DNA of 64,000 bases from Pavona decussata (lineage: Eukaryota), in assembly GCA_977016875.1 (NCBI GenBank), contig CDRNST010000310.1, forward strand, positions 1,240,001-1,304,000, written 5' to 3'. Positions within the stretch are counted from its first letter, which is position 1, and every line of letters begins with the position of its first letter. This document shows positions 4,310-60,657 of this stretch, one piece after another. The position numbers and the translations under genes are program-made. The notes beneath the pieces are model-generated. The model searched no databases. It was given only the letters and a program-made list of their open reading frames with translations, and was not told where the DNA came from.

Positions 4310-4975
4310 CTAGATATCAGTCGATATACACGACTCATCACTTGCACAACATACCGAATAGTTTCTGAAGAAGTTATTGTCCCAGTAATCGCTTCCTTCA
4401 ACGCTGTAACGAATAGCAAACTCCATTTTGCTTCCCTCTTGCCAAATCGATGGCACGGCTATGCGGAAAAAAAACGTATCTGTCGCTCCATCCCTTGAAG
4501 TCGAAAGGTAGTTGGCTTGTTCGTCGCAAACGGTTTTCCAATCGTCTGTACTATAACGAATCGTAACGTCTTTCCTGTAGCTCACGTTTAATACTCGTAC
4601 AAACCCACGAACGATGGTCTTGTCGCAAACAACGCTCTCCAGACAAACGTACTGTCGCTGAACTCTATCGAGGAAATCGTCTTTATTTTCGGGTTGATCA
4701 AATAGGCATTTAAGGCATCGTCGCGCAGAATTCACTCGGTGCTTTTGTTGGGGGCGTTTAATCGACTCTTTGGGTTTGTTCCTTGGAGCAATTTCTATCA
4801 CAGTAACCAGTGAAAATCCCAGTAAATCAGCGAAGGTAACTCGTTTTTTGTTAGCTGTTATTTCCCATAAAGACGTCCTGGGAGCGATTTGTGCCACAGA
4901 AAACAGCGAAAATCTCGGTAAACCAGGAAACGTACTATAACCTCTTTTCTCGGTATTTTCCATAAAGACGTCCAT
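4310..4975 (-). CDS. PPP1R3: PP1 glycogen-targeting regulatory subunit (PPP1R3 family), divergent copy G1, ~221 aa
   Basis: KRVTFAD (RVxF) motif followed by CBM21 signatures CLE, GFVRVLNVSYRKDVTIRYSTDDW, MEFAIRY and YWDNN. The ORF-track start at 5026 is TTG; the first in-frame ATG is at 4975. Family-level call only. Confidence 0.9.
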   Translation of the reverse strand: MDVFMENTEKRGYSTFPGLPRFSLFSVAQIAPRTSLWEITANKKRVTFADLLGFSLVTVIEIAPRNKPKESIKRPQQKHRVNSARRCLKCLFDQPENKDDFLDRVQRQYVCLESVVCDKTIVRGFVRVLNVSYRKDVTIRYSTDDWKTVCDEQANYLSTSRDGATDTFFFRIAVPSIWQEGSKMEFAIRYSVEGSDYWDNNFFRNYSVCCASDESCISTDI

Positions 4976-5020
4976 AACAAGAGATGTCTTATGAAGAGAA
5001 TTAATTAAACTTGAGTATAA

Positions 5021-5094
5021 TTTCAAGCTGTTGTCTACGGGACGTGCAACAATTCACGACTGTTCACGTGATCCCACTGCACGTGTGCACGTGC
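5021..5094. promoter_or_regulatory. HRE/E-box cluster upstream of G1
   Basis: gACGTG-caacaatt-CACGA followed by CACGTG at 5065, 5080 and 5088; the block is conserved with 7988-8039. Confidence 0.65.
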
Positions 5095-5416
5095 GAAAAC
5101 ATTTCAGTATTTGCATAAAAGTATTAAAAGGAGAAGATCAAATCAGCGCAAAAATGCTGGTAGTCAGAAATAAATATCGAAGTGATTTTTCATCGTATTT
5201 TCCTTTATCTATTTATTTATTATTTATTTTTATCTTTTAATAGAGTTGATTTAACACCGAGCATGGACCAATAAGTGGCGTGACTGTTAACCTTACAGCT
5301 GTTTCGATATATCAGGAGATATATATCGGGGGAGGGAGGGAAATATAGTACTTATCTCATTAGAGAGGGGGGGGGGGGCTGGTCAGAATTTTGTCATTTT
5401 CTCTTCAGTTTGGATA

Positions 5417-6853: not shown

Positions 6854-7805
6854 GAACGCCGTTTGCCATCCTCATGCCTCTTAAAATAAATCAAGAGTAT
6901 TTCATACACTTGATAATGACTTTTCAAGTCAAAACATTTTACCTTTAGTCGTAAGTTTCCATACGAGGCTTTATAGACGAATACACAAGTCTAGTTCAGA
7001 GTCTTTGGTACATTGAAACTATTACTATCAGCGCCATCGAAAATAAGGTACCCATGGCCGGCTGATGGGCCGGAATGTGCAATTGACCTGTTAAATTTTA
7101 CTTTGGAGACAATGTTTCTCTCACAGTTTGGTCTAAAACAGTCATGACTGGATCTCCAAACACTGTACATGGTAATTTTTTCCGTCGTTGTTATCCCAGA
7201 ACTCCTGGTTCAACACTCGATAGCAAATCGCAAACTGCATGTGCCGATTTACTTCAAAGTCGAGCGGAACTGTGATGCGGAAGGTGAACTTGTCGGTCTT
7301 CCCGTCCGAGCAAGACGACATGTAATCAGTCCAAATGTCCCGATAAGTCTCCCAGCCATCGAGTGTAAATCGTACAGTCACTTCTTTTCTGTAGGATAAA
7401 TTCGTCACTCGAATAAGTCCACTTACAACGAACTTTTCACATGCAATATTCTCAAGGCAGACATTTTGGCTGTACAAGCGCCGCATGAAACCGTCAATTC
7501 TCGAAGGCGCAACGAAGCAAGGTAGCAAACATTTCTTTGGTTCAACCCGCGGGATGTTTCCGTTGACATCGAAGCGGTTTTTCCGCGCACCAATGGCGCC
7601 ATATAATTCGCACAAGTTGTCTTCACTGTTGCATGGTGTTATAATTTTAACGAACTCGAGCTTGAGACCAACAAGGTCTGCAAAACAGACTTTTTTCGAG
7701 CGTAACGTGGGGCTGGTTGGCACAGTGCTCTTTTGTTGCGTGTCAGTCTTCATGGCCGCGGGTTTCTAGAATGAAGGTCAACAGTTCAAGCGCGCATCCG
7801 TGTTT
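6854..7805. repeat. Left copy of a ~950 bp direct repeat (G2 plus 3' flank); partner at 59711-60657
   Basis: Shared sequence begins gaacgccgtttgc(c/t)atcctcatg and continues through the CDS. Confidence 0.9.
7142..7753 (-). CDS. PPP1R3: PPP1R3-family glycogen-targeting subunit G2, 203 aa
   Basis: ATG in GCGGCCATG context; KKVCFAD, GLIRVTNLSYRKEVTVRFTLDGW, FAICY and FWDNN motifs. Confidence 0.92.
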   Translation of the reverse strand: MKTDTQQKSTVPTSPTLRSKKVCFADLVGLKLEFVKIITPCNSEDNLCELYGAIGARKNRFDVNGNIPRVEPKKCLLPCFVAPSRIDGFMRRLYSQNVCLENIACEKFVVSGLIRVTNLSYRKEVTVRFTLDGWETYRDIWTDYMSSCSDGKTDKFTFRITVPLDFEVNRHMQFAICYRVLNQEFWDNNDGKNYHVQCLEIQS

Positions 7806-7987: not shown

Positions 7988-8039
7988 TTGCAAGCTGCTT
8001 CCTGCGGGGCGTGCGACAGTTCACGGCTGTACACGTGAT
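7988..8039. promoter_or_regulatory. HRE/E-box block upstream of G2
   Basis: gGCGTG-cgacagtt-CACGG...CACGTG; 42/52 ungapped identity to 5021-5072 (hand count). Confidence 0.65.
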
Positions 8040-9559
8040 TGAACTTGCGTAAACATTTTAGCGATTTGTATAAACACGAGAGGTAAGAGGATGCAAATGT
8101 GCGGCTTTTGATAACAAAAATAGATAAAAGGACTTTTGATTCAAGATATTTAAAATTTCGTGGATAAACACTGAAGAGATTGTTATGGGGACTGAAACTT
8201 GTCTCACTCTTTTCCAGGTTCCCTCTCAGTCCCGGTGCACCCTTTCAATAAAAACAAGGTAGACGTGGACTTTGTACTAGCTGTTTTTAAAAGGCAAACT
8301 TCTTATTATTATTAAAATATTTTGAGTCAATCTTCTTGTTGGAGGTTATGAGGGAAAATTCAGACATCAGAGCCAAAAACCTCAGACCCTTTGTGAGGTG
8401 TCTCGAAAACTCTGACCCGAAAGACTCAGACCCCGGCTGACAAACAAATCCGCGTAACTTCAGCGTACACAAAAGGTCGCCACACTTAGAAAAAAATTCG
8501 TGACACAAGTCATGACCATCTTAAGATATATTAACATGTAGTTGTGTCAAATAATACAATTAGTGTTGCGCCGTAGTGGGCCCCTGAAGCCATTTTGGGT
8601 TTTAATACTTTTTGCGTCTTCCTTTTCACATCTACTCGTCCCCAGGGAAATTAAACGTAACTTCTTGGGAAGACGGTAGTTAGGCAGTTAGTTGGTTTCC
8701 ATTCGAGGCGATGTTGTAAAATACGCGCAATGAACTTTCCGTCACGAGACAGACACGTGCCTTTCATTTGCGCAGGCCGGAGGAAACAACGAACAGGAGA
8801 GGTTTGTGTGCACTTGAGCGGGCAATAACTTCCGAATTGTAGCCCGCACGGGCCACATTTGAATTAAGCCCTTGGGAAGCAACTAACGAGAGTGCACCTT
8901 ATGGTGAAAAGAAACTGCAGCAATGAAACTTTTACTTTTTATTTGCTGTTTTTGCCTCTTGATGAACATTATCACTATTAATTCCACCAAGAAATAACCC
9001 TGGGCGAGCGGTCCATTTTTGAAGTTCCATAAATTCTATAAAGTTTATTAAAACGTTTATCGGACCTACTGACGATTCATGTTTGTAATCGCTGTTGCTC
9101 CTCGAATTCCAAATTCAAATGTTTTCTTAATGGGTAGACAAAAGCTCGCTTTCGAAGTATTGATTGACTGCTTTTCTTCTCCGATGTTCGTTGTTTTTTT
9201 CGTCCGGTTGTTGACATTTTTCAGGGTCACCCCACGGGAAAATTAAAGCAAACACTTCAGACACTGTCCCCTGTGTTCCAAGATAAGTTGATGTCCTTTG
9301 AAAGGCACCTTTCTGCAAACTAATACAGATTGTCCTGTTTGGATGTTTTTGTGGTGAAGAAAGTTTCAGGAAACAGAATCTTATCTCCCGAATTTACAAG
9401 CTGTTGTTTCGTTTGGTTTGTTTTGACAAGAAGTCAAAACTTCGAAGCTAAATATAAATCCTTTATTTTTTCATTCAGTGCGTGGAAGTCTTGATGACTT
9501 TTTAGTTCACACAAGAGTTTTATTTATTGAATCACCACTGAGGTTAATATAAAATATGC

Positions 9560-9900
9560 GGGATAAAACTAACAACATCAACAGATAAAAAACAAGAACA
9601 AATTAAAGAAGATGGAGGGTGTAGCAGGGAGTAGTAATAGGACGGATTCCCAAATGACAACTGCTCCCTCTAACTAAGAAAGAGAAGAAAACAACTTTAG
9701 TCTAAAAGAAATAAGATAACGAGAACCAAAAAAGCGTAAAAATAAAAAAATTAAGGGATAAAGAAGTTATTCAAGTCTGTTTGTAAGAAGGGAGTTTACT
9801 AATGTAAAAACTAATGAGCTTGGATTTCAAACAATCCTCAGTCGAATCGCAGCTTCAGTCCTAGGGCTGATTATTCCAAAGCTAAGCTTAAAAGCTCTCG
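9560..9900 (-). mobile_element. Old LINE 3' fragment, repeated at ~19790, 25750, 34105, 40600, 47835 and 50555
   Basis: Consensus of the copies translates LWNNLPQDCKSCNSTEDSLKSKLISFY, followed by a T-rich 3' UTR. Confidence 0.55.
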
Positions 9901-11545
9901 GGAAATAAGAGAAGCTAAAGTAGTTTTGCCGGTGCGTGAAAGATGTGAGAAAATTCGTATGAGTAATGTAAACCATGCAACCCTCTAATGTTTTCTTTTT
10001 TTTTTTTACGTGGATATAGATCTTCAGTTGTATCTTTCCATTAGATCTCCTCGAAATTATTTCTTGTGACTGGCCAACCCTTACTTTACGTTAATTGGTT
10101 GATGTCTAATTGCAAATTACTCGTCATGGTGATTACTAGTTTCCAAAAAGCCTTCAACAACCGTGTTAGTCCGTGGTCATTTACCAGGATTGCTGCAATG
10201 TTTGATACTTGAATTTGTCCAAGATTTGTAAGAGATATCAATTGTTCAATGGCTGTAGTTGAAACACTGATAAACAGCTAAGGCAGTTGCAGCAGTAAGA
10301 CAGTAATATTGGATAAATGCAGAGGGTCTATAGTTATCTGTGGTGGTTATGGTGGTGGAGGGTCCTGGTAAATACACCTGCAATTACAAGTCAACTAACT
10401 ACAAAGATCCACAAGCACTGATCTCCATGATTTGGTCAACATGAGTCTAGAGTTTTACTGAACATTTGCCAATACTTAGAGACACAATTAGTAGAAACCA
10501 CATGCATCCACATAATGCGAAGGGAACGGACTAAGAAGATGTAGAGGCACTTTTTGTTGGAGTGGCTCTGGTTCTTATTCTCTCGGTAGTGCTCAGGTGC
10601 TGCAAGTTCAGTGTTGTCATGGTAGCTGAGAAGTAAAAAAAACTTGGGGTATAGGTGGACCAGCGTGGTTGTTTGTTTGGAATATTATGACTGTCTCTTG
10701 AGACAGTTCTTCCAATACTTTGTTAGATGAAACTGTTTAATTGTTTAGCCAGATAAATCTATCAATCTTACACTGAGTTGGTGGTATATACGCGAATGAT
10801 TCTCCACGTTATTTTCAATCTCTATTTGCCACTCTGTCATAACGAGTACCTAAACCATATCTATTATATGATTTAGGTACTTCAGTTAAATCTGAGCTAC
10901 AGGCGAATCTCAGTAGGGGTAACGTAAGAGGATCCAGTTCTCTCTTTTCAAATCTGAAATTAACTACTTTGTCACTAAATAATCAAACGTGTTCATTGTA
11001 AAGAGAGAAAACGAGCCAAGTAGGAAATTAAATCCAGGTATTAAAATTTTTTGAGGCTAAGCGACAATTCCTTACTTCTGAAACTCAAGTTAGATGAATG
11101 CGTGGATAGATCAAGGCAGGACAGGACTTGCCTTCTATATAAATTTTTATTTTATTGTTTACATTCATGTTGACTAACGTTGTAAAGTTTTTATTGGAAG
11201 ACACAGGAAAAAATGTTGCAAAGATTCCTTGGAAGTGAGTTTCAACCTTCCATGTATTGCAAGATAAACGTAGTGGTGTACAGAAATTAATTGTGTTTGA
11301 AGTTCCATGCAATGGACACATTTCCCTTGGCATTTTACCCCTGCAATCAAAACTTTGTGGATCCACCACTGATCTCAGGAATTTTTGTTATTTTCGTTTT
11401 GATTGTCACTAGTGGTGGACTGGTGGTGATAACTCTGGTGATGGTGGTACCTGGGTGGTATTCGGTACTAAAGCTGGTCCTGCTTGTGTCAGTGGTGGTA
11501 TTCTTTGTTCATTGTCAATATGAAAGTGGATTTCATTGTTGTGTT

Positions 11546-16940: not shown

Positions 16941-17531
16941 TCACGGAGCAATTTCAAGGCACTGAACATGATAGTTTCTTCCAAAGTTATTGTCCCAAAA
17001 CTCGTATCCACTGACACGGTAGCGAATTGCAAATTCAATTTGCAGATCAACTTCAAAATCTACCGGAGCTGTAATTCGAAAGCTAAATTGTTCCGTTTTT
17101 CCATCCGGATTTGAGGACAAATAATCCGCCCAAACATCTCGGAAGTTGATCCAGCCGTCAAGTGTGTATCTCAATGTAATCTCTTTAGCATAACCTATGT
17201 TTGTCACTCGTATAACCCCCGTAACAACCATATCGTCGCAAGAGATACTTTCGAGACAAAAGTACTGTTTAGAGACGCGCTCCATGAAAGAATCTGTTTT
17301 ACATAGCTCAGCGAAACTTGGCGACAGGTATTTCATTCTCTGTCGTGAAGTGTGCATGTGTAAGCCGCAGCTGTTGTTGTCCGTGGTTGTATGGCAGACA
17401 GTCACGTCATCTTCTTTGCTGTATGGAGGTATGGTTTTCACGTTCTCAAGGGCGAAACCAAAGCTGTCTGCAAAAGAAACCTTCTTCTTTATAGACCTCG
17501 TTGGAGTAGAGTTTCCGCTTGACCCATTCAT
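16941..17531 (-). CDS. PPP1R3: PPP1R3-family subunit, array copy A1, intact, 196 aa
   Basis: KKKVSFAD, GVIRVTNIGYAKEITLRYTLDGW, IEFAIRY and FWDNN; CRE+TATA upstream; minus-strand AATAAA at ~16859-16877. Confidence 0.92.
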   Translation of the reverse strand: MNGSSGNSTPTRSIKKKVSFADSFGFALENVKTIPPYSKEDDVTVCHTTTDNNSCGLHMHTSRQRMKYLSPSFAELCKTDSFMERVSKQYFCLESISCDDMVVTGVIRVTNIGYAKEITLRYTLDGWINFRDVWADYLSSNPDGKTEQFSFRITAPVDFEVDLQIEFAIRYRVSGYEFWDNNFGRNYHVQCLEIAP

Positions 17532-23405: not shown

Positions 23406-23999
23406 TCACTGAGAAATTTCAAGGCACTGAACATGATAGTTTCTTTCAAAGTTATTGTCCCAAAACTCGTATCCAGCGACACGATAGCGAATTGCAAATT
23501 CAATTTGCAGATCAACTTCAAAATCCACTGGAACTGTAATTCGAAAGCTAAATTGCTCCGTTTTTCCATCCAGATTTGAGGACAAATAATCCGCCCAAAC
23601 ATCTCGGAAGTTGATCCAGCCGTCAAGCGTATATCTCACTGTCACCTCTTTAGCATAACCGATGTTTGTCACTCGTATAACCCCCGTAACAACCATATCG
23701 TCGCAAGAGATACTTTCGAGACAAACGTACTGTTTAGAGACGCGCTCCATGAAAGAATCTGTTTTACATGGCTCAGCGAAACTTGGCGACAGGTATTTCA
23801 TTCTCGGTCGTGAAGCATGCATGTGTAAGCCGCAGCTGTTGTTGTCCGTGGTTGTATCACAGACAGTCACGTCATCTTCTTTGCTGTATGGAGGTATGGT
23901 TTTCACGTTCTCAAGGGCGAAACCAAAGCTGTCTGCAAAAGTCTAAACCTTCTTCTTTATCGACCTCGTTGGAGTAGAGTTTCCGCTTGACCCATTCAT
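23406..23999 (-). pseudogene. PPP1R3: PPP1R3 array copy A2 with a premature stop inside the RVxF motif
   Basis: ATG at 23999. A 3-nt insertion converts GTT TCT TTT (VSF) to GTT TAG ACT TTT (V*TF), with the stop at 23943-23945. The rest of the frame, including CBM21, is open. Confidence 0.88.
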
Positions 24000-26985: not shown

Positions 26986-28175
26986 GTTATGGTGGTGGAG
27001 GGTCTGGTAGATACGCCTGCAATTACAAGTCAACTAACTGCAAAGATCCACAAACACTAATCCCCATGATTTGATCAACATGAATCTAGAGGTTTCCTGA
27101 ACATTTGCCAATACTTAGAGATACAATTAGTTGAAACCACTTGCATCCCCATCATGCGAAGGTAACGGACTGAGAAGATGTAGAGGCACTTTTTGTTAGA
27201 GTAGCTGTGGTTCTTGTTCTCTCAGTAGTGCTCAGGAGCTGAAAGTTCAGTATTGCCATGGCCCAGTGTTGTTGTTTGTTTGGAATAATGAATGTGTCTT
27301 GAGCCAGTTCATCCAACACTTTGTTAGATGAAAATGTTTAATTGTTTAGCCAGATAAATCTTTCAATCTTACACTGAGTTGGTGATATATACGCGAATGA
27401 TTCTCCACTTTATTTTCAATCTCTATTTGCTACTCTGTCATAACGAGTACCTTAACCATAGCTATTATATGATTTAGGTACTTTAGTTAAATCTGAGCTA
27501 CAGGCGAATCTCAGTAGGGGTAAGGTAAGAGAATCCGGATCCCCCCTTTTCAAATCTGGAATTAACTACTTTGTCATCAAATAATCAAACGTCCTCATAG
27601 TAAAGAGAGAAAACGAGCTAAGCAGGAAATTATATTGAATCCAGGTATTAAAATTTGCTGAGGCTAAGCGACAATCCCTTACTTCTGAAACTTAAGTCAG
27701 ATGAATGCGTGGATAGATCAAGATGGGATAAGACTTGCCTTTCATAAAAAATTTTATTTTATTGTTGACATTGATGTTGACTAACATTGTACAGTTTTTA
27801 TTAGAAGACGCAAGAAAAAATGTTTCAAATATTTCTTGGAAATGAGTTTCAACCTTCCATGCATTGCTAGATAAACGTAATAGTGTACAGAAATTAATTG
27901 TGTATGAAGTTCCATGCAATAACGAGATACATTCACCTTGGCATCTACTGTTTTAAAGGTGATATTTGGACCCCTGCAATCAAAACTTTGTGGATCCACC
28001 CCTGATTTCAGGTGTGTTTGTTATTTTTTTGTGATTGTCACTAATGGTGGACTGGTGGTGATAACTGGTGATTTGGTGGTACCCGGGTTGTATTCGATAC
28101 TAAACCTGGTTATTTGTGTCAGTGGTGGTAGTCTTTGTTCATTGTCAGTATGAAAGTGGATTTCATTGTTGTGTT

Positions 28176-28481
28176 TGCTCTGTTGTGGTCGAGGTGGCTG
28201 CCCTGCAGTCTTTTGCTCCCTCAATATGAGTATGTTTAATTTCTTTCTATTTTGATTTGACTCTATTGTGGTCGAGGTGGCTGCAAAGCAGTCTTTTGCT
28301 CCCTCAATATAAGTTTTTTGTTTCCAACTTACAACCTCTCCCCGCATACAAAATTTCCCTACCTTATACCCACTGATTGGTGATTGGGAACCCTTTAACT
28401 AGGTGATCCCATAACTCAACACTTACAATGCCAGAAAGGTTGCTAGCGAATCTACTGTTATCTGTTTTTTTTTTTTTACAA
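28176..28481. mobile_element. Same unclassified insertion with 30-bp direct repeats
   Basis: cagtatgaaagtggatttcattgttgtgtt at 28146-28175 and 28482-28511. Confidence 0.7.
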
Positions 28482-37773: not shown

Positions 37774-38358
37774 TCACTGAGCAATTTCAAGGCACTGAAC
37801 ATGATAGTTCCTTCCAAAGTTATTGTCCCAAAACTCGTATCCACCGACACGGTAGCGAATTGCAAATTCAACTTCCAGATCAACTTTTAAATCTACCGGA
37901 GCTGTAATTCGAAAGCTAAATTGTTCCGTTTTTCCATCCAGATTTGAGGACAAATAATCCGCCCAAACATCTCGGAAGTTGATCCAGCCGTCAAGCGTAT
38001 ATCTCACTGTCACCTCTTTAGCATAACCTATGTTTGTCACTCGTATAACCCCCGTAACAACCATATCGTCGCAAGTGATACTTTCGAGACAAACGTACTG
38101 TTTAAAGACGCGCTCTATGAAAGAATCTGTTTTACATGGCTCAGCGAAACTTGGCGACAGGTATTTCACTCTCTGTCGTGAAGCGTGCATGTGTAAGCCG
38201 TTGTTGTCCGTGGCTGTATGGCAGACAGTCACCTCATTTTCTTTGCTGTATGGAGGTATAGTTTTCACGTTCTCAAGGGCGAAACCAAAGCTGTCTGCAA
38301 AAGAAACCTTCTTCTTTATCGACCTCGTTGGAGTAGAGTTTTCGCTTGACCCATTCAT
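37774..38358 (-). CDS. PPP1R3: PPP1R3-family subunit, array copy A4, intact, 194 aa
   Basis: KKKVSFAD plus complete CBM21 (GVIRVTN..K, DGW, EFAIRY, WDNN). Confidence 0.92.
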   Translation of the reverse strand: MNGSSENSTPTRSIKKKVSFADSFGFALENVKTIPPYSKENEVTVCHTATDNNGLHMHASRQRVKYLSPSFAEPCKTDSFIERVFKQYVCLESITCDDMVVTGVIRVTNIGYAKEVTVRYTLDGWINFRDVWADYLSSNLDGKTEQFSFRITAPVDLKVDLEVEFAIRYRVGGYEFWDNNFGRNYHVQCLEIAQ

Positions 38359-41781: not shown

Positions 41782-44700
41782 GTCTATAGTTATCTGTGGT
41801 GGTTATGGTGGTGGAAGGTCCTGGTAGATACACCTGCAATTACAAGTCAACTAACTACAAAGATCCACAAACACTAATCCCCATGATTTGGTCAACATGA
41901 ATCTAGAATTTTCCTGAACATTTGCCAATGCTTAGATTTACAATTAGTTGAAAACCACATGCATCCCCATCATGCGAAGGTAACGGACTAAGAAGATGTA
42001 GGGCACTTTTTGTTGGAGTGGATCTGGTTCTTATTCTCTCGGTAGTGCTCAGGGGCCGAACGTTCAGTGTTGTCATGGCAGCAGTGGTTAAAAAACTTGG
42101 GGTGTGGGTGGACCAGCGTTGCTGTCTGTTTGGAATAATGACTGTCTCTTGAGACAGTTCATCCAATACTTTGTTAGATGAAAATTGTTTAAGTTTTCAC
42201 CAGCCAGATTAATCTGTCAATCTTTCAGTTGGTGATATATACACGAATAATTCTCCACTTCATTTTCAATCTCAATGTGTTACTGTCACCATAGCTATGA
42301 TTAAGGTACTTCAGGTAAATCTGAGCTACCGGCGAATCTCTGGGTAAGGTAAGGAGATCCAGATCCCCCTTTTCAAATCTGAACTTATCTACTTTGTCAT
42401 CAACTTTGTAATGAAGTGTGTTCATACTAAAGAGGGAAAACGAGTGAATCCAGGTTTTAAAATTTGCTAAGACTAAGCAACAATTCCTTATTTCTGAGAC
42501 TCAAGTTAGATGAATACATGGATAGATAAACGCAGGATAGGACTTGCCTTCTATATAAAATTTTATTATATTGTTGACATTGATGTTGACCAACATTGTA
42601 CAATTTATATCAGAAGACACAAGAAAAAAATGTTCCAAACATTTCTTGGAAGTGAGTTTCAACCTTCCATACATTGCTAGATAAAGGTTATGGTGTACAG
42701 AAATTGTGTATGACGTTCCATGCAATAGACACATTTCCCTTGGCATCTACTGTTTTAAAGGTGATTTTTTACCCCTGCAATCAAAACTTTTGTGGATCCA
42801 CTCTTAATCTCAGGTATTTTTGTTATTTTTGTTTTGATTGTCACTAGTGGTGGACCTGTTGGTGAAAACTGGTGATGGTGGTACCCAGGTGGTATTCGGT
42901 AGTCTTTTTTCATTGTCAGTATGAAAGTGGATTTTATTGTTGTGTTCGCATTGATATTGTATGTGCTATAACGGTTGTACATATCATAGACTTCGAGCTT
43001 CTGTCGTGGCTATGGCAGTATTGATTGAAGTCCCAGTTAGATGCTTTTGTAGTGTTAGATATGATTTACTTTGTAAAAATCGTACCTAGTAATAGTTGAA
43101 CGGTGCTTACTATTTTGCCTGTTCATTGGCAGTAATTGGGTACTTGGTAAGTAAAAGTTGTCTAAGTTGTGTAATGGTCATTGTAATTGTCTGAGTAGTA
43201 GAGGTACTTGTCCAAGTTGCAGTTTGTAGGGTTTTTTGCAGGTAATTGTCAGTTCTGGTTGAGAGCTGTTGATGTGTTTCTGATTTTCATTGGTGGTTGC
43301 TGTGATAGTTGCTTGTAGTGGAAAATATGTATGATGAAAAAGTTGTAGTAAGGTAGTCATACTTGTGATGGCAGCCCACCATTACATAGAGTGCCAGTCA
43401 TATGATGTCAGTAGCCATGATCCATGATGATTGTGTTAATCATACTTTTTCCTGGCAGTGATTGAGGTTTCATTAGAGGATGTGTTAATGGTAAATTGAT
43501 TGAAGCAAGACTCTAACAATTGTGTCAAAAGGTTCTTGCCATGACATGGGTTTTATTATTGTCATAATGGCTGAAGATGACACAGTGGTGGTATTAGAGA
43601 CTAAGGTGATATTAGCGGTTGTAGTAGTGTTTGCTGCTGTTCTGACACTAGTGATTCCAGTACAGTGGTAGACATAATTGTTATATCAGTCACTAATGCT
43701 TGTGATGTGATTATAATAAATGGTAATTGTACACGTGGTAGTGGTAGTGATGCATGTTGGTCGTGGTACTTGACTAGAGTTACTGGCGTCAAGTTTAATA
43801 TGACAGTAGTCGCAGTTGTATTAAGTCGGTAATGATGGAGTTGTGATGGGTGCGGTTGTAGCTGTCATAGTAGTAGTTGTAGTTGTGGTATATGTACTTG
43901 CTGTAGCAATCGGGGTGGCTTTGATGGTGGTAGAAGGTCTGTGTTCCAGATTATCGACCGTTTATCAAGCACGAAAAAAGGCCGGCACAGATCAAGCAAT
44001 TTCGGTATACTTATTGCATCAATGGCACTGGATGTAGTTGTGCGTAAAATAAGGTAACATGTGTTGTCGTTACACGACACCACAAGCTCTTGCATTTACA
44101 AGCCAGTGAGTGGAGTTGCATGAGTCACTATAAGACAGGAGTGTTATATACAAAGTTATAACAAGGTGAAATATTGAAGGGCGAAGGTAGCCGGCACAGT
44201 AGAAAATGTCAAGCAGCATTTAATAGCAAATTGCGTCAAGTTAAAACTTAGGTTCATTGAGCCCTTGCAGTCAGTGCTTGAAGGTTAGTCTAGTCTCTGA
44301 CAAGAAGGGAGCTGTTCGATAACTGAACGCAGTGAGTCTATGAAAGAGGTGCTTTTGGGGTATTAGGAGGGAGTCTAGGTTGCAGAGGTACTTGACTTGT
44401 GTCAGTTTAGAATAGTCGAAGGATGTGTTACCCAACCGGCGAAAACCTGATCTTTGTATCGAAAACATTAATGTTTGAGTGTGGGCCTGGGTGATGTGAG
44501 AGTTATCTGTTGAGTGGAGGTCTGCGTGCTGACAATGTAGGAAGGAGTTAACGATATTAATGACTCGGTGAGTTGCTGGAGTCAGTCGACGGCCGGAGTG
44601 CGGAACCTTCGTCAGTGTACGCTTCAACATGGCAACAATAAACGTGAGCCCACTTAACCGATATAAATTAATTCTAAACATTTTAATAGTTTGTTTTGTT

Positions 44701-45014: not shown

Positions 45015-45599
45015 TCACTGAGAAATTTCAAGGCACTGAACATGATAGTTCCTTCCAAAGTTATTGTCCCAAAACTCGTATCCACCGACACGGTAGCGAA
45101 TTGCAAATTCAATTTGCAGATCAACTTCAAAATCCACCGGAGCTTTAATTCGAAAGCTAAATTGTTCCGTTTTTCCATCCAGATTTGAGGACAAATAATC
45201 CGCCCAAACATCTCGGAAGTTGATCCAGCCGTCAAGCGTATATCTCACTGTCACCTCTTTAGCATAACCTATGTTTGTCACTCGTATAACCCCCGTAACA
45301 ACCATATCGTCGCAAGAGATACTTTCGAGACAAACGAACTGGTTAAAGACGCGCTCCATGAAAGAATCTGTTTTACATGGCTCAGCGAAACTTGGCGACA
45401 GGTATTTCATTCTCTGTCGTGAAGCGTGCATGTGTAAGCCGTTGTTGTCCGTGGCTGTATAACAGACAGTCACCTCATTTTCTTTGCTGTATGGAGGTAT
45501 AGTTTTCACGTTCTCAAGGGCGAAACCAAAGCTGTCTGCAAAAGAAACCTTCTTCTTTATCGACCTCGATGGAGTAGAGTTTTCGCTTGACCCATTCAT
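45015..45599 (-). CDS. PPP1R3: PPP1R3-family subunit, array copy A5, intact, 194 aa
   Basis: KKKVSFAD plus complete CBM21; shares the 2-aa linker deletion (DNNGLH) with A4. Confidence 0.92.
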   Translation of the reverse strand: MNGSSENSTPSRSIKKKVSFADSFGFALENVKTIPPYSKENEVTVCYTATDNNGLHMHASRQRMKYLSPSFAEPCKTDSFMERVFNQFVCLESISCDDMVVTGVIRVTNIGYAKEVTVRYTLDGWINFRDVWADYLSSNLDGKTEQFSFRIKAPVDFEVDLQIEFAIRYRVGGYEFWDNNFGRNYHVQCLEISQ

Positions 45600-46062: not shown

Positions 46063-48614
46063 TAGTCATTCACTTATTTATGTTCAATGTTGTTTAGTAA
46101 TTTTTGTTTTAACCCAGAACATTGTACAAATAACCCAGATGCCATCGAAAAAGACAAAAGATACTTTCGTGCGGGTTGACACGGTTTTCTTTTCCATTGC
46201 TTTTATATCATGTAGGATTTCATTCAACTAGTTTTCCTGATTTCTATGTGGTAAAGGTTTTAACCTTCTTAAAACCAATATTTTAGTTTAAGACCTGTAT
46301 TGGTGATGCAACAGTGTAAATAGTCAGTGTGATTTCATGACTCAAGACACTTTTATAATTGCACTAAAAAGTACCGAGCTCAGTACAAGATGCAAAAAAC
46401 ATTTTTGTTTCAACCCACTCCTTAACAATATTCAGCCAGTCATTGATCAAAAGCTTAGTCAGTAATTTAGTGCTCAATGTGATTTCTACTGAGTTGTTCT
46501 TTACCCAGCAGGGAATTTCCTTTGTATATCTCTGCATGCCGTCTTTATGATCGTGTCTTGCGTCTACTGTGTTTCAAGCCCAGCCAGCATGTCTTACTGA
46601 TACACGTGCGGGCATACACGACTAAGTACTGAGTTTGCTGCCAACCAGCTCTAAGCCCATTTATTTTGCTTATAATTATTGTAATTATTATACTGCTGTA
46701 AGCGTCTTCCTTGCTCTAAGCATCTTAGGTTAGTTTTCACATTGTATCAGTAGTTTTAAGCATAGCCTTGAGGTATAACTAAAGCAAGATGCTGTGCCTT
46801 TTCTTTAGGGAATATTAACATCTAGGGTTCTTGATTTGTGTTGCAACAAAACAGCAAATCTATAGTAAAAAGATATATTCCAAGAACGTTTCTTTGTGGC
46901 ATTGTCGTATTGTAGGGCAAACGGAGACTTAGTAAAGTTTTGTGACATTGTTTTAGAGAGAAGCACTGAAACAACCTACTGTTGTTTTGGTCAATGTTTT
47001 TACTAAAACTGTAATTCAAGGTGATGTAGCTTTCCCTGCAGTAGTGGCTTGTGCTTGTCCTTTCGTTTTAGGACTGAAGAACATTTTGTTTTAAGGATTT
47101 AATAAGTTTATTGCTTCAATCACATCATTCAATTTACAGTTAATATTCTAGTACCACACGTGATGAGGGTGGCTACAGAATAACCCTACAAGAGTAGCAG
47201 AGAATTCTTGAAATTATAGATCTCTTCAGAAATTGGAAATTGGGTCAACTGCAACACATATACAACTAATAGTTGTATATGTAATAACTTTTTTGGATTG
47301 TTGTTCCTGCACCTTTTCCGTAGAAATATATTAACACCGGCTGAACCCAAACTGAGGCTAGAACTTCATAGTTAAGTTTAATATATTTTCATTTGAGGGT
47401 TGTGCTTAGTGCTCAATGTGATTTCTTCGGAGTTGTTCTCTACCAACTGAAGCAGAGAATTTTCTTTGTGCATCTCTGCATGCTGCCTTAATGACCGTGT
47501 CTTGCGACGATCAAGCCTTGCTTCCGGCTCAACAAACATGCGGTTATACTGATAGTTCAAAGTTTGGCCGGCACACATGCCGGCATACACGACTTACTAG
47601 TTAGTTTGTTGCCAACCGTCTCTAAGCCCACGTATTTTCAGTTGCTGATAATTATTATAATTAGGAAACGGAACCTTATCTCCCAAATTTACAAGCTGAA
47701 GTCAAAACTTCAACGCTGAATAGAAATCCGTTTTAGTTTTTTGTTTTTTCATTCAGTGCACGGAAGTCTTGATAACTTTTTAGTTCACATAAGAGATTTT
47801 TTTATTGAATCACCACAGAAGTCAATATCAAATATGCAGGATAAAACAAACACCATCAAGAGATAAAAAACAAAAACAAATTAAAGAAGGTGGAGGGTGT
47901 GGTAGGGAGTAGTAATAGGACGGATTCCAAGATGACAGCTGCTCCCTATAACTAAGAAAGAGAAGAAAAAGAACTTTAGTCTAAAATAATAAGATAATGA
48001 GATTCAAGGAAGCGTAATAATAAAAAAAATATAAAGGATAAAGAAGTTATTCAGGCCTGTTTGTAAGAAGAGAGTTTACTAATGTAAAACTGATCAGCTT
48101 GGATTTTAAAGAATTCTCAGTCGAATTACAGCTTTTACAGTCCTGGGGCAGATTGTTCCAAAGCTAAGCTTAAAAGCTCTCGAGAGAATAAGAAACGCTA
48201 AAGTAGTTTTGCCGGTGCGTGAAAGATGTGAGAAGATTCGTATGAGTAATGTAAACAATGCAATCTCCTAATGTTTTTTTTTTTCTTTTACATGGATATA
48301 TATCTTTAGTTGTATCTTCCCATTAGATCTCCACGAAATGATTTCTTGTGAGTCAACCCTTACTTTGAGTTAATTGCTTTATGTCTGATTGCAAATTACT
48401 CGTCATGGTGATTACTAGTTTCCAATAAGCCTTCAACAACCGTGTTAGTCAGTGGTCATTTACCGGGATTGCTGCATGCAATGATTGATACTTTAATTTC
48501 TCCAAGGTTTGTTAGGGAAATCGATTGTTCAGTGGCTGTAGTTGAAGCACCGATAAATAGCTAAGGCAGTTGCAGTAGTAAGACAGTCATAATATTGGAT
48601 GAATGCTGAAGGAT

Positions 48615-52000: not shown

Positions 52001-54530
52001 ATTCCTTATTTCTGAGACTCAAGTCAGATGAATGCATCGATAGATAAAGGCAGGATAGGACTTGCCTTCTATAGAAAATTTTATTATATTGTTGACATTG
52101 ATGTTGACCAACATTGTACAATTTATATCAGAAGACACAAGAAAAAAATGTTTCAAACATTTCTTGGAAGTGAGTTTCAACCTTCCATACATTGCTAGAT
52201 AAAGGTAATGGTGTACAGAAATTAATTGTGTATGACGTTCCATGCAATAGACACATTTCCCTTGGCATCTACTGTTTTAAAGGTGATTTTTTACCCCTGC
52301 AATCAAAACTTTTGTGGATCCACCCCTGATCTCAGGTATTTCTGTTATTTTTTGTGATTGTCACTAGTGGTGGACTGGTGGTGATAACTGGTGATGGTGG
52401 TACCCGGGTGGTATTCGGTACTAAACTTGGTCTTACTTGTGTCAGTGGTAGTAGTTTTCAGTGTTCATTGCCAGTATGAAAGTGGATTTAATTCTGTTGT
52501 GCTCGCATTGATATTGCATGTGCTATAACGGTTGTACATATCATAGACTTCGAGCTTCTGTCGTGGCTATGGCAGTATTGATTGAAGTCCCAGTTAGATG
52601 CTTTTGTAGTGTTAGATATGATTTACTTTGTAAAAATCGTACCTAGTAATAGTTGAACGGTGCTTATTATTTTGCCTGTTCATTGGCAGTAATTGAGTAC
52701 TTGGTAAGTAAAAGTTGTCTAAGTTGTGTAATGGTCATTGTAATTGTCTGAGTAGTAGAGGTACTTGTTCAAGTTGCAGTTTGTAGTGTTTTTTGTAGGT
52801 AATTGTCAGTTGTGGTTGAGAGCTGTTGATGTGTTTCTGATTTTCATTGGTGGTTGCTGTGATAGTTGCTTGTAGTGGAAAATATGTATGATGTATTAGT
52901 TACAGTAAGGTAGTCATACTTGTGATGGCAGCCCACCATTACATAGAGTGTCAGTCATGATGTCAGTAGCCATGATCATGAATGCGTTAATCATATTTTT
53001 GTCCTGGCAGTGATTGAGGTTTCATAAGAGGATGTGTTAATGGTAAGTGGATTGAAGCAAGACTCTGACAATTGTGTCAAAAGGTTCTTGCCATGACATG
53101 GGTTTTATCACTGTCATAATGGCTGAAGATGACACGGTGGTGGTATTAGAGATTAAGGTGATTTTAGCGGTTGTAGTAGTGTTTGCTGCTGTTCTGACAC
53201 TAGTGATTCCAGTACAGTGGTAGAACTAATTGTTACTGATATCAGTCAGTAATAATTGTAATGTGATTAAGATAAAAAGTAATTGTACATGTGGCAGTGG
53301 TAGTGGTGCATGTTGGTTATGGTACTAGGCTAGAGTTACCGGCGTCAAGTTTAATATGACAGTAGTTGCAGTTGTGTTAAGTCGGTAATGATGGTGTTAT
53401 GATGGGTGTGGTTGTAGCTGTCTTAGTAGGTAGTTGTGGTATATGTACTTGCTGTAGTAATTGGGATGGCTTTGATGGTGGTAGAAGTTCTGTGTTCCAG
53501 ACAATCGACCGTTTATCAAGCACGAAATAAGGCCGGCACAGATCATGACAAAAGAAACAATTTCGGTATACTTATATTGCATCAATGGCACTGGCCCGAT
53601 GAAGTTGTGCGTAAAATAAGGAAAAATGTGTTGTCGTAACCCTACAAGCTATTGCATTTACAAGCCAGTGAGTGGAGTTGCATGAGTCACTATAAGACAG
53701 GAGTGTTATACAAAGTTATGTGAAGCTGAAATATCCAAGGGCGAAGGTAGCACAGTAGAAAATGTACTGTCAATGCAGCATTTAATACCAAATTGCGTGA
53801 AGTTAAAATTTTGGTTTAGTGAGATCTTGCATTGCTTGAAGGTTAGTTTAGTTGACCGACAAGAAGGGAGCTGTTCTATAACTGAAAACAGTGAGTCCAT
53901 GAAAGAGGTGCTTTTGGGGTATTAGGAGGGAGTCTAGGTTGCAGATGTACTGTACTTGTGTCAGTTTAGAATATAGTCAAAGGATGTGTCAGCCAACCGG
54001 CGAAAACCTGATCTTTGTATCGAAAACATTCATGTTTGAGTGTGGGCCTGGGTGATGTGAGAGTTATCTGTTGAGTGGAGGTCTGCGTGCTGACAATGTA
54101 GGAAGGAGTTAACGATATTAATGACTCGGTGAGTTGCTGGAGTCAGTCGACGGCCGGAGTGCGGAACCTTCGTCAGTGTACGCTTCAACATGGCAGCAAT
54201 AAACGTGAGCCGACTTAACCGATATAAATTAATTCTAAACATTTAAATAGTTTGTTTTCTTTAGACTACAGATGAAGTGAGTTGTGGTGGTAGAATGAAT
54301 TGAAGAAAGGTTTCTTGCCTAAAGGAAACCAGCTATTGAGCTACCAAATTTCAAACAATTTAGGCGCTCGCTAGTCGACCACCTGCACTTGTCAATTGAT
54401 AAATTGCAGTTGGACAACTTACAGACAAGCATTTAATTTTATGTAAATAAAAACAAAACGAAAAAAGGATATATGTCGCTCACCTTTGAAAACTAAATTG
54501 TTTTATTTACTAGTTTTATTACAGGATGAG

Positions 54531-55181
54531 CTATCGTTTAAAGTTGATGGTGCATGTTAAGTTTTTCTTAAGAAGACAACTGTTCACTTGAGAAATTTCA
54601 AGGCACTGAACATGATAGTTCCTTTCAAAGTTATTGTCCCAAAACTCGTATCCACCGACACGGTAGCGAATTGCAAATTCAATTTGCAGATCAACTTCAA
54701 AATCTACCGGAGCTGTAATTCGAAAGCTAAATTGTTCCGTTTTTCCATCCAGATTTGAGGACAAATAATCCGCCCAAACATCTCGGAAGTTAATCCAGCC
54801 GTCAAGCGTATATCTCGCTGTCACCTCTTTACCAAAACCTATGTTTGTCACTCGTATAACCCCCGTAACAACCATATCATCGCAAGAGATACTTTCGAGA
54901 CAAACGTTCTGTTTAAAGACGCGCTCCATGAAAGAATCTGTTTGACATGGCTCAGCGAAACTTGGCGACAGGTATTTCATTCTCTGTCGTGAAGTGTGCA
55001 TGTGTAAGCCGCAGCTAGCGCTGTTGTTGTCTGTGGTTGTATGGCAGACAGTCACGTCATCTTCTCTGCTGTATGGAGGTATGGTTTTCACGTTCTCAAG
55101 GGCGAAACCAAAGCTGTCTGCAAAAGAAACCTTCTTCTTTATCGACCTCGTTGGAGTAGAGTTTCTGCTGGGCTCATTCAT
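54531..55181 (-). CDS. PPP1R3: PPP1R3-family subunit, array copy A6, 216 aa with C-terminal read-through
   Basis: All motifs intact. A 1-nt insertion just before the normal stop (tgttcacttgag vs tgttcactgag) adds 18 aa; there is also a 2-aa linker insertion (NNSASCG). Confidence 0.88.
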   Translation of the reverse strand: MNEPSRNSTPTRSIKKKVSFADSFGFALENVKTIPPYSREDDVTVCHTTTDNNSASCGLHMHTSRQRMKYLSPSFAEPCQTDSFMERVFKQNVCLESISCDDMVVTGVIRVTNIGFGKEVTARYTLDGWINFRDVWADYLSSNLDGKTEQFSFRITAPVDFEVDLQIEFAIRYRVGGYEFWDNNFERNYHVQCLEISQVNSCLLKKNLTCTINFKR

Positions 55182-55274: not shown

Positions 55275-55308
55275 TTTATAATTGCCACTTCGGAATCTTG
55301 TGACGTCA
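55275..55308 (-). promoter_or_regulatory. CRE+TATA of A6
   Basis: TGACGTCA 55301-55308; TATAAA 55275-55280. Confidence 0.7.
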
Positions 55309-56069: not shown

Positions 56070-57835
56070 GTGTTCAATGTGATTTCTACTGAGTTGTTCT
56101 TTACCCAGCAGGGAATTTCCTTTGTATATCTCTGCATGCTGTCTTTATGATCGTGTCTCGCAACGACGAAACGGTCAACTGTGCTTCCGGCTCAGCAAAC
56201 ATGCCTTACTGATACACGTGCGGGCATACACGACTAAGTACTGAGTTTGCTGCTAACCGGCTCTAAGCCCATTTATTTTGCTGATAATTATTGTAATTAT
56301 TATACTGCTGTAAGCGTCTTCCTTGCTCTAAGCATCTTAGGTTAGTTTTCACATTGTATCAGTAGTTTTAAGCATAGCCTTGAGGTATAACTAAAGCAAG
56401 ATGCTATGCCTTTTCTTTAGGGAAGATTAACATCTAGTGTTCTTGATTTGTGTTGCAACAAAACAGCAAATCTACAGTAAAAAAGATAAATTTTAAAGAA
56501 CATTTCTTTGTGGCATTGTCATATTGTAGGGCAAAGAGACTTGGTAAAGTTTTGTGACATTGTTTTAGAGAGAAGCACTGAAACAACCTACTGTTGTTTT
56601 GGTCAATGTGTTTACTAAAACTGTAATTCAAGGTGATGTAGCTTTCCCTGCAGTAGTGGCTTGTGCTTGTCCACTCTTTTTAGGGCTTAAGAACATTTTG
56701 TTTTAAGTTTTAATAAGTTTATTGCTTCAATCACATCATTCAATTTACAGTTAATATTCTAGTACTACACGTGAAGAGGGAAGCTACAGAATAGCTCTAG
56801 AAGAGTAGCAGAGAATTCTTGAAATTATAAATCTCTTCAGAAATTGGAAATTGGGTCAACTGCAACACATATACAACTAATAGTTGTATATGTAATAACG
56901 TTTTTGGATTGTTGTTCCTGCACCTTTTCCGTAGAAATATATTAACACCGGCTTAACCCAAACTGATGCTAGAACTTCAGAGTTATGCTTAATATATTTT
57001 CATTTGAGGGTTATGCTTAGTGCTCAATGTGATTTCTTCGGAGTTGTTCTTTACCAACTGAAGCAGAGAATTTTCTTTGTACATCTCTGCATGCTGCCTT
57101 AATGACCGTGTCTTGCGACGATAAAGCCTTGCTTCCGGCTCAACAAACATGCGGTTATACTGATAGTTCAAAGTTTGGCCGGCACACATGCCGGCATACA
57201 CGACTTACTAGTTAGTTTGTTGCCAACCGTCTCTAAGCCCACGTATTTTCAGTTGCTGATAATTATTATAATTATTACACTACTTTAAAAGTCTTCTTGT
57301 ACTTGGCATCTTAGGTTAGTCCGCACATTGTATCAGTAACTTTAAGCATAGCTTTGAGATGTGACTTTTAGCAAGACTTTGATATAATGCCTTTTCTTTA
57401 GGAAACTGGTGAAACGAAGATTAGCGTCTAGGGTTCTTCATTTTTGTGGCTACAAAACAACAAATTTATAGTAAAAACTATGTTCCAATAACATTTCTTT
57501 GTGGCTTTGTCATATTTTAAAGCGGAGAGATTTAAATTTTTGTGACATTTTTTAACGAGCAGCACTGAAACAAACTACTGGTGTTTTGGTCAATGTTTTT
57601 ACCAAAACTGTAATTCAAGGTGATGCCATTTTCCCTAGAGTAGTGGCTTGTGCTTGTCCACTTTGGGAGAGTTGAAGAACATCATAAAGTTTTAAGTTTT
57701 AATAACTTTATTGCTTCCATCACATCATACTATTTACAGTTAATATTCTAGTACGGTATGTGTTGAAGGAGTCTATAGAAATGTAGAGAATGCTTGAAAT
57801 TGTACTGAGATCTCTTCAGAAATTGGAAATTGGGC
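56070..57835. repeat. Older diverged tandem duplication (56070-56856 vs 57020-57835); partial copies in upstream units
   Basis: Colinear anchors caatgtgatttct, tgtatcagta, agtagtggcttgtgcttgtcca, tttacagttaatattctagtac and atctcttcagaaattggaaattggg. Confidence 0.8.
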
Positions 57836-59710
57836 TCATTGCAAAACTGAGAGCCATATTTAACTGTTGTTAGTTATGGCCTTAATAAATGCATTCAACA
57901 TTATTAACAATAATTACAATAGAACTCTCTGAAAAAAATTGTCACATAGGCAACAAAGTAAAAGAAAAAAATATAAAGCAACAGTTTATTCATTAGAATA
58001 AAGAGACATCATTTGCTACTGCTGTTTCTCTTCAGTGTTGATTCTATTCCTTTTAACGAGTAACATGATTTTACAAAGAAAGTATTTCTGGGATCAGTCT
58101 AGAAACCTTTTTGTCAGCCGGGTTTGACCGCTTCAGTTCACGCTATTGATTTGTACATCAGTTTTCCTAACCATTCACGTATGGTGCCATAATTCATGAG
58201 AGTGACATCCATACTCGATCTCTATATTAGGGTTTATACAGGATTTCGAGAAGGTATGGTGTATAATTGCCTCAACTGTACAATTTTAATAAAGCGGTCT
58301 CTTGTACTACTCCTCACCTCCTATTGTAGTTAGAAAGACATTCAAATCCCTGAGCTCATTTACACTGCTCCATTCAGTATAGACTGATGCTAACTGAAGC
58401 TACACGAAGAATGCATGACAAGCAACAATTGAAGTGAATTGGTACTATGATGTTTTCAATACATAAAGCAGCCGGACTTTCACAACATTTTTGAGGTGGC
58501 GTTAAAAAGCACCTCAACCCACTGGAAAGCTTTTACACACTTAAAGACTTTCGAGAAAAGATAGATGGAGCATTTTGATTTGATGCAGTATCCTGAACAT
58601 AAATCGTGAGACTCAAGGAACGTGAATGACAAACTTTGCCGGAATTTGGTTTCTTTTATTGTACTTTTTTAGTTAGTAACTGAAAAATCAATCAGTTACA
58701 CTCCAGTGAAGGTATTCTTGGACCTGTTAATCGCTACAAATGCTGCAAAAGCAGGTATATTTAACTGCCAATAGGTAATTATCATTGGCCAAAGCCGTCC
58801 GGTAGAGATAATAACAAAGATTATAGGCAAGGCAGTTGTTTACATATACTTGTACTAAAATCTGATCGCATATGCTTCATTATTTTTGTTGTATAGCAAT
58901 TTGACGATTGAGAGATATTTCAGTTTCATTAAAACGGAGAAAAGACGAGTCAGGAGTGCATCAGTGTCTTGAAGCCTTCAACAACAACAACATATGCCCA
59001 GAAGGTGCATTGGTTACGGTCATCGTGCTGATAGCATGACGAAGAAAGCACTCTGCGAGCCTTGAACGCACGCAAGAAAGCTAACACTCTTCGCAACAGT
59101 GCGCCGAGTATTCTCGGAAGAAATAAACTTCTCCAAACACAATATACGTGCGATATTCTTTTAAATGCTATCAGTTGTTTTTCAGAAAATAACCTCTTTT
59201 CACTTAGGGTTCATTGAAAACAATATGACATGGCAGGTTGAACATCGCGATATTTTGTTTACTCACGAAGTGTTTATCCAAGTGTGGCCGTAAAATTCAC
59301 TGTTTCAGTGAGTCAGGGATTAACTATGGATCTGTTCTGACCAAACCGTGACTAAATCTGCCAAATGACATAATTCTTTTATCATAAAATTTGCATTTTA
59401 TTTCGAGATGTCGGTCTTCTATTCATTCACGATTTACTCCTTGAAGCACAAAGGTCAGTTTTGGCCGCCATTGACGTGTTTTTCTTACTACGATTGCTTG
59501 GCGGTAAAAAGTAGAACCAGGTTTTAAACGTGCTTTTCACAACTGAACTCTCATCAGTCTGAGTTAATGTTTCGGAAACAATATATATTAACACAGTTTA
59601 GAGCAATTTCTAATTTTTACAATGTAATCTTCGGTCTAATTATTCGCACAAACAAATGTTTATATTGCAAACCTGTCGTTTGCTGTTGATAATTTACGTT
59701 TTTTTCTCGA

Positions 59711-60657
59711 GAACGCCGTTTGCTATCCTCATGTCTCTTAATATAAATCAAGAGTATTTCATACGCTTGATTATGACTTTTCAAGTCAAAACATTTTACT
59801 TTTAGTCGTAAGTTTCCATACGAGGCTTTATAGACGAATACACAAGTTTAGTTCAGAGTCTTTGGTACATTGAAACTATTACTATCAGCCTCATCGAAAA
59901 TGAGGTACCCCTGGCCGGCGGATGGGCCGAAATGCACAATTGACTTGTTAAATTTTACTTTGGAGACAATGTTTCTCTCACAGTTTGGTCTAAAACCGGT
60001 CATGACTGGATCTCCAAACACTGTACATGGTAATTTTTTCCGTCGTTGTTATCCCAGAACTCTTGGTTCAACACTCGATAGCAAATCGCAAACTGCATGT
60101 GCCGATTTACTTCAAAGTCAAACGGAACTGTGATGCGGAAGGTGAACTTGTCGGTCTTCCCGTCCGAGCAAGAAGACATGTAATCAGTCCAAATATCCCG
60201 ATAATTCTTCCAGCCATCGAGTGTGAATCGCACAGTCACTTCTTTTCTGTAGGATAAATTCGTCACTCGAATAAGTCCACTTACAACGAACTTTTCACAT
60301 GCAATGTTCTCAAGGCAGACATTTTGGCTGTACAAGCGCCGCATGAAACCGTCAATTCTCGAAGGCGCAACGAAGCAAGGTAGCAAACATTTCTTTGGTT
60401 CAACCCGCGGGATGTTTCCGTTGATATCGCAATGGTCTTTCCGAGCATCAGCGACGTTACGTAAGTCGCACAGGTTGTCTTCACTGCTGCACGGTGTTAT
60501 AGTTTTAACGAACTCGAGCTTGAGACCAACAAGGTCTGCAAAACAGACTTTTTTCGGGCTGGTTGGCGCAGTACTCTTTTGTTGCGTGTCAGTCTTCATG
60601 GCCGCACTGAGGTTTCAGTCTTAAATAATGTCTAACCGTTCAAGCGTGGATCCGTGT
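59711..60657. repeat. Right copy of the ~950 bp direct repeat (G9 plus 3' flank)
   Basis: Colinear with 6854-7805. Confidence 0.9.
60000..60599 (-). CDS. PPP1R3: PPP1R3-family subunit G9, 199 aa, close paralog of 7142..7753
   Basis: KKVCFAD plus CBM21; the C-terminal ~140 aa differ from G2 at only a few positions. Confidence 0.92.
   Translation of the reverse strand: MKTDTQQKSTAPTSPKKVCFADLVGLKLEFVKTITPCSSEDNLCDLRNVADARKDHCDINGNIPRVEPKKCLLPCFVAPSRIDGFMRRLYSQNVCLENIACEKFVVSGLIRVTNLSYRKEVTVRFTLDGWKNYRDIWTDYMSSCSDGKTDKFTFRITVPFDFEVNRHMQFAICYRVLNQEFWDNNDGKNYHVQCLEIQS

Follow-up and report, generated by a model that had tools for sequence, protein, structure and literature searches.

A conserved same-strand cluster of PPP1R3-type genes in Pavona decussata and a young tandem array within it that probably evolves by birth and death

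Mammals have seven dispersed PPP1R3 genes, PPP1R3A to PPP1R3G, which encode glycogen-targeting subunits of protein phosphatase 1 (PP1), and the substrate-binding region of this family includes a C-terminal W-D-N-N-x-G-x-N-Y stretch. For the coral host, glycogen is a main store of short-term energy, and PPP1R3 subunits set when PP1 switches glycogen synthase on. Here we analyze a cluster of PPP1R3-type genes in Pavona decussata, located in a 64,000-nucleotide stretch of contig CDRNST010000310.1 (GenBank assembly GCA_977016875.1, positions 1,240,001 to 1,304,000), hereafter the window, in whose own numbering coordinates are given. Among the mammalian subunits, the main sugar contacts of PPP1R3C (PTG) are Asn177, Phe180, Glu181, and Lys182, and phosphorylation of a serine at the x position of the PP1-docking RVxF motif releases PP1 from PPP1R3A (GM) and PPP1R3B (GL; PMC9582199). 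Tandem duplication is pervasive in coral genomes (PMC10236652). We propose that the Pavona locus is quite probably an old, conserved PPP1R3 cluster to which an ordinary birth-and-death tandem array has been added.

A six-frame search of the 602-Mb assembly for CBM_21 (Pfam PF03370; cut-off 28.9 bits) gave twelve matches, 11 of them on a single 70-kb stretch and the remaining one on another contig. Nine lie within the window, all on the minus strand and in three subtypes, namely G1, G2/G9, and A1-A6, and two further genes, G10 (L001:330-989) and G11 (L001:8749-9561), follow on the same strand just past its end, so that the cluster does not stop at 60599 as originally predicted. All of these, as well as the unlinked gene, match the profile at E values of 1e-28 to 1e-32 and 99-110 bits. 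The first gene, G1 (4310-4975), has a KRVTF motif and a CBM_21 match at E 2.6e-29, and while its mechanically called open reading frame (ORF) extends to 5026, the start is likely the ATG at 4975. It is followed by the G-type gene G2 (7142-7753; KKVCF, E 8.2e-32), by the six A-type genes and then by G9 (60000-60599; E 3e-31), a G-type paralogue of G2. Three of the A copies are intact in every respect, A1 (16941-17531; KKKVSF, E 1.7e-28), A4 (37774-38358; E 8e-30), and A5 (45015-45599; E 5.1e-31), while A2 (23406-23999; CBM_21 part still at E 3.8e-29) and A3 (30495-31085) are pseudogenes, the latter with one in-frame TAG (30819-30821) inside a six-frame CBM_21 match of 101 bits, and in A6 (54531-55181) a 1-nt insertion near 54588 has removed the stop. 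The original prediction of nine minus-strand genes combining RVxF and CBM21 in three subtypes is therefore borne out by the Pfam matches and sequence identities as to loci, strand, and subtypes, but two of the nine are broken and seven are intact, A6 being counted among these with an altered tail. Each gene has a single coding exon, in agreement with the annotated Oculina orthologue, which is one contiguous ORF of 205 codons. The window proteins are of ∼195-240 residues, with an RVxF-type motif 15-60 residues from the start in each. Their closest named proteins come from stony corals, and the sequencing runs that contain this stretch carry the label of a single coral species or 'coral metagenome'. 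Protein identity is 90% between G2 and G9, 87-93% among A1-A6, and ∼43% between G1 and the rest.

The assignment to the PPP1R3 family, which the original prediction had made, is upheld by alignment with proteins of known structure. Residues 3-188 of A5 align with human PPP1R3C as crystallized with PP1 (7QM2_B, E 1e-27), an alignment that covers both the RVxF segment and the CBM21 domain, and matches to A5 were also obtained for the CBM21 domains of both PPP1R3A and PPP1R3B (2M83, E 2.1e-21, and 2EEF, E 1.5e-17). The docking motifs are KRVTF in G1, KKVCF in G2 and G9, KKVSF in A1 and A3-A6, RRVHF in G10 and the unlinked gene, and KSVQF in G11; in A2 the motif is split by a stop. They align with 84-RVVF-87 of PTG, the A-type KKKVSFAD falling on KKRVVFAD. 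Every coral copy contains V-x-N-x-x-[FY]-x-K, in which the Asn, the aromatic residue, and the Lys of the PTG sugar contacts are kept and the equivalent of Glu181 is replaced. The WDNN stretch reads FWDNNFGRNY or FWDNNFERNY in the A copies, FWDNNDGKNY in G2 and G9, and WDNNFFRNY in G1, and these align with FWDNNDGQNY of PTG. We infer, by analogy with PTG, that the coral proteins would dock PP1 by RVxF and bind glycogen by CBM21. The x position of RVxF is Ser in the A type, where it stands behind basic residues, and Thr in G1, with Cys, His, or Gln in the other subtypes, and from these residue differences the paralogues may differ in regulation.

The cluster itself is shared with other corals. 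Orthologues of the G1, G, A, G10, and G11 subtypes are each present in other coral genera, and G1-type orthologues at 60-90% identity are found in many corals, including Desmophyllum and Oculina, with the G1 clade starred in our tree. Here the gene order is G11, G10, G9, A6 to A1, G2, G1, and this agrees with a 1.33-Mb contig of another coral genus that carries G11, G10, G, A, A, a divergent A, and G1 within 37.6 kb, all on the same strand. A third coral has G11, G10, G, and G, the azooxanthellate Desmophyllum pertusum has an A/G-like piece 6 kb before a G1-type gene on the same strand, and in Oculina patagonica two chromosomes carry at least six members of the family between them. The flanks examined here did not contain the TRPM2-like gene that neighbours the G1-type gene in Oculina. 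The family tree places G10, G1, G, and A in a single clade (92/98) restricted to corals, where G and A are each other's closest relatives (94/90). G11 falls outside it with weak support, and the unlinked gene clusters with the Acropora 'PPP1R3B-like' protein, Nematostella, and the mollusc Patella (97/90). From these comparisons, which include the azooxanthellate Desmophyllum, the multi-gene same-strand cluster is a shared stony-coral feature and is not tied to symbiosis. The suggestion in the original prediction of a lineage-specific expansion thus applies to the A array and the G2/G9 pair only, and not to the subtypes or the cluster, which have orthologues in other coral genera and the same order in one of them. 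As a separate observation, two contigs of one ENA assembly (L012 and L013) carry the same G-type gene pair with different flanks and are probably two haplotypes or a segmental duplication.

The six-unit A array and the G2/G9 duplication are the only young events that we recognize at the locus. G2 is 98% identical to protein P0044 of a near relative, with a ratio of nonsynonymous to synonymous substitution rates (dN/dS) of 0.22 against its orthologue, and it differs from G9 by a synonymous divergence (dS) of 0.11, the two sharing only ∼950 bp of DNA at 92% in the self-comparison. The A array occupies a tandemly repeated region (9361-57844) of six units, each of which comprises an A-type gene and a spacer and is ∼7.2 kb long, or ∼9.5 kb in the case of the last. 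The units are 88-94% identical to each other by self-blastn, which is no chance pattern, and no copy of the array was found elsewhere in the assembly. A1-A6 and the genes of two near relatives form one clade within the A subfamily. When a DNA tree was built from the 1.9-kb unit core, A3 fell outside a starred clade of the other five units and A4 paired with A5 (90/91), as it does in a second tree. In the same core tree A1, A2, and a metagenome scaffold from a separate sample (L016) are adjacent but unresolved, and A6 and a relative's single unit are ∼1.2% apart. On this topology A3 is the oldest of the array units.

The copy number of the array differs in a closely related genome. A contig that is ∼1% diverged (L008) holds one A unit instead of six; it is colinear with the window at 63774-47740 and 9089-6688 at ∼96% and is without the interval 9089-47740, which includes A1 to A5. 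Two copies of an 860-bp spacer segment, one proximal (9462-10320) and one distal (47740-48606), mark the two sides of the switch between the six- and one-unit forms, since this contig follows the distal side at 97-99% as far as the segment and the proximal side beyond, with the switch inside the segment. Full-length copies of the segment occur only inside this array. A1-A5 differ from A6 by 6-10% while the relative's unit is only ∼1% from A6, and for that reason the one-unit form is best explained, from these sequence distances, by a multi-unit ancestor that lost units through unequal recombination. The metagenome scaffold L016 contains an A1-like copy at 96.4% identity, so the units found beyond this assembly are of more than one type.

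Several further observations concern the array units and their spacers. The protein of scaffold L016 looks like a mosaic, with both ends A1-like and a middle that is A6-like (IGFGKEVTA), which hints at gene conversion or recombination between array copies. Bases 62-293 of the proximal 860-bp segment (9523-9754) are a short dispersed repeat, 72-75% identical to copies on more than 30 other contigs, and this is probably an element resembling a short interspersed nuclear element or a miniature inverted-repeat transposable element. A low-complexity stretch of ∼1.2 kb (52300-53500), G/T-rich on the plus strand, has a periodic GC skew of 0.24-0.31 and ORFs that lack a Pfam match, and it recurs in each A unit (∼28000-30000, 36000-38000, and 42000-44000). 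Six spacer ORFs of 107-147 residues likewise gave no Pfam match, and Tandem Repeats Finder detected no satellite, only two short ATG-type runs. Runs of N were not encountered.

Within the array there are signs of decay. A2 reads KKKV*TFAD, with a stop inside the PP1-docking motif at ∼23943-23945, and A3 reads VFK*NV. In A6 one extra base directly precedes the stop and adds ∼18 residues; apart from this, the relative's single A gene matches it at 99.5% identity. That near-identical gene is without the extra base, one base at 54588 is likewise missing from a contig of run X1, and the insertion (54585-54590) is either a private mutation or an assembly error. Four of the six A copies remain intact on this count. 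Pairwise dN/dS values among the A copies are 0.3-1.8, compared with 0.13-0.30 in orthologous comparisons. Changes private to a single copy number 27 nonsynonymous and 6 synonymous, a set of 33 that is small and includes the two pseudogenes, and they do not depart from a neutral nonsynonymous share of 0.79 (binomial p 0.83), whereas they do differ from the between-species counts of 43 and 36 (Fisher p 0.0095). Near-neutral substitution, together with two dead copies and one lost stop, is the basis for concluding that constraint is relaxed, and by these sequence measures the A array seems to be free of constraint and not retained for dosage.

Taken together, the locus has what a birth-and-death array is expected to have, namely head-to-tail units with spacers, paralogues that are monophyletic with respect to other species, pseudogenes, and a copy-number difference, the latter seen in one assembled contig. 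We envisage that serial tandem duplication in the coral lineage would have given rise to the G10, G1, G, and A subfamilies beside an older G11, with one canonical PPP1R3B-like gene elsewhere in the genome. More recently, unequal crossing-over may have amplified an A gene and its spacer into the six ∼7.2-kb units, and G may have duplicated into G2 and G9, which now lie on either side of the array. The array would since have behaved as a birth-and-death repeat, drifting nearly neutrally to give two pseudogenes and a third copy without its stop, while recombination between spacer repeats would alter the copy number, to six here and to one in the ∼1%-diverged genome. The products are predicted, from their mammalian counterparts, to be scaffolds of ∼200 residues in which RVxF docks the PP1 catalytic subunit and CBM21 binds glycogen, which would bring PP1 to glycogen synthase and phosphorylase.

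Certain points weigh against this history. The same ratio of nonsynonymous to synonymous changes could arise if purifying and positive selection were both at work, and the persistence of four intact A copies with every key motif is also predicted by some selection for dosage. Assembly errors could account for the A2 and A3 stops and the A6 insertion, and the one-unit contig could reflect collapse during assembly and not a real haplotype. The independent-sample evidence comes from assembled Logan contigs, and the word depths of run X1, which are 225-280 for the A gene, 47-67 for unique spacer, and 146 for G9, are not a copy number and serve as a pointer only.

Control of the genes may also differ between the subtypes. 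Upstream of G1 is a putative promoter block on the minus strand (5043-5093) with three CACGTG within 29 bp and a GCACGT, and a partial copy of it (8010-8038, minus strand) lies 257-285 bp upstream of the G2 ATG. A 29-nt degenerate pattern matched the window only at 5043-5071 and 8010-8038 and matched none of 100 shuffled sequences. In L008 the G2 orthologue is likewise preceded by the partial block, and the block, in the form of two or three CACGTG and a GCACGT, aligned upstream of G1-type genes in four coral genera including this one, among them the azooxanthellate Desmophyllum (regions compared: L018, L014, and L015, block at ∼9820-9900). Three CACGTG lie at -254 to -351 of the unlinked PPP1R3B-like gene. 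Within 600 bp of the start, G9 and all A copies are without the block, and in the A copies not even a single CACGTG is found there. This distribution suggests that the paralogues differ in control. Window-wide, CACGTG is only marginally frequent (16 against 10.3 expected, with copies in units not independent), and the D-box TTAYGTAA is not enriched in the window (10 found against 7.8 expected, 6 of the 10 being one inherited site per A unit). A much broader proposal, that stony corals keep nearly all of their PP1 glycogen-targeting subunits in one co-oriented cluster with subfamily-specific promoters that wire glycogen storage to clock, oxygen, or glucose signals, and that A copy number is a segregating variant altering energy storage among colonies, is to our minds doubtful as a whole.

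The alternative that survives best is that of the original prediction, in which the array is an adaptive dosage or regulatory expansion of glycogen-storage control for photosymbiosis, with its daytime glucose influx and night-time hypoxia. It is consistent with the four A copies that are intact in their RVxF and CBM21 motifs, and with the independent tandem duplication of G-type or A-type genes in several corals. In Acropora tenuis, one of the most abundant rhythmic transcripts under clock control comes from a host CBM21 gene (PMC11271600), and in Nematostella a PP1R3B gene is up-regulated under hypoxia (PMC12010470); either gene may belong to any of the subfamilies. The tie to photosymbiosis is nevertheless not supported, given that A/G-like and G1-type genes are also adjacent in the azooxanthellate Desmophyllum pertusum. 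Against dosage, two of the six A copies are dead, the copy-specific changes are at the neutral ratio, and the ∼1%-diverged genome has a single unit. Moreover, the A copies are without the E-box-rich promoter block of G1, G2, and the unlinked gene, and the RNA-library contigs on A copies are too few to call the array expressed, since a metatranscriptomic library gave contigs on G9 (60009-60499) and one 122-nt piece at 95% on A6. Hence we regard an adaptive expansion for photosymbiosis as unlikely. In addition, A-type Logan contigs of a sister species from several runs (L020-L024 and L017) have a common 5′ end 374 nt upstream of the ATG and a common 3′ end ∼665 nt downstream of the stop and are colinear with the genome, which fits either an intronless mRNA of ∼1.6 kb or break points of the assembly graph.

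Neofunctionalization, in which positive selection would be turning the A copies into distinct PP1 regulators, is more improbable still. Some pairs do have a dN/dS above 1 (1.77 for A4-A5, with 13 nonsynonymous and 2 synonymous changes, and 1.51 for A4 and the A gene of the one-unit contig, L008_A), and the Ser of the A-type KKVSF is the residue whose phosphorylation frees PP1 from GM and GL (PMC9582199), but with counts this low significance is not reached, and the ratio from all changes pooled is the one expected under neutrality. The changes are also spread out instead of clustering on a surface, and there are pseudogenes within the same array. That the array is an assembly artefact of stacked haplotypes or an over-expanded repeat, the true locus having one or two A units, draws on the closely related one-unit contig and on window coverage that comes from assembled contigs rather than raw reads, but we reject it as having almost no chance of being correct, since the units differ by 6-12% against ∼1% between orthologous units and thus far more than alleles do, each carries substitutions and lesions of its own, an A1-like copy was recovered in a metagenome from another sample, the A-gene word depth in run X1 is 4-5x that of unique spacer, and no haplotig or other second copy of the locus exists in the assembly.

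With these alternatives weighed, a conserved cluster with a young birth-and-death array is the reading we prefer. As it stands, the locus is an ordinary gene-family cluster with a young, decaying array in genomes known for pervasive tandem duplication. Its wider interest is that nearly the whole family lies in one conserved cluster with unlike promoters, which makes it a compact locus for daily or stress control of coral energy storage, and the difference in copy number, if real, would be a convenient natural experiment.

The array resembles the coral tandem families described by Noel et al. (2023; PMC10236652) in its pattern of recent genus- or species-specific duplication over older shared ones, although that study stresses immune, signalling, and receptor families and its main text is without the words glycogen, 'phosphatase 1', and CBM. 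Our literature search found no paper describing a coral PPP1R3 or CBM21 cluster. Individual coral proteins have been named by NCBI in Oculina patagonica, Montipora foliosa, and Desmophyllum pertusum (PPP1R3C-like, glycogen-binding subunit 76A-like, PPP1R3G, and PPP1R3E), and these are orthologues of the G-type (66-77%) and G1-type (60-64%) genes, whereas among the records returned none was named for an A-type gene.

At the level of the proteins, GM and GL likewise combine CBM21 with RVxF, and the Ser of the A-type KKVSF occupies the position of their phosphorylated Ser, and the coral residue may by analogy be phosphorylated too; unlike GM, the coral proteins are without a membrane anchor or long tail. 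The closest likeness is to PTG, which has the same order of RVxF, linker, and CBM21, and whose site-II sugar contacts (the Asn, the aromatic residue, and the Lys) and FWDNN-G-NY stretch are kept. In contrast to PTG, the coral proteins, at ∼195-270 residues, amount to about the minimal PTG core without its long N- and C-terminal tails, and Glu181 is replaced by A, G, R, H, or Q depending on the subtype. Whereas mammalian PTG is a dispersed single gene, its coral counterparts are 11 paralogues in one cluster.

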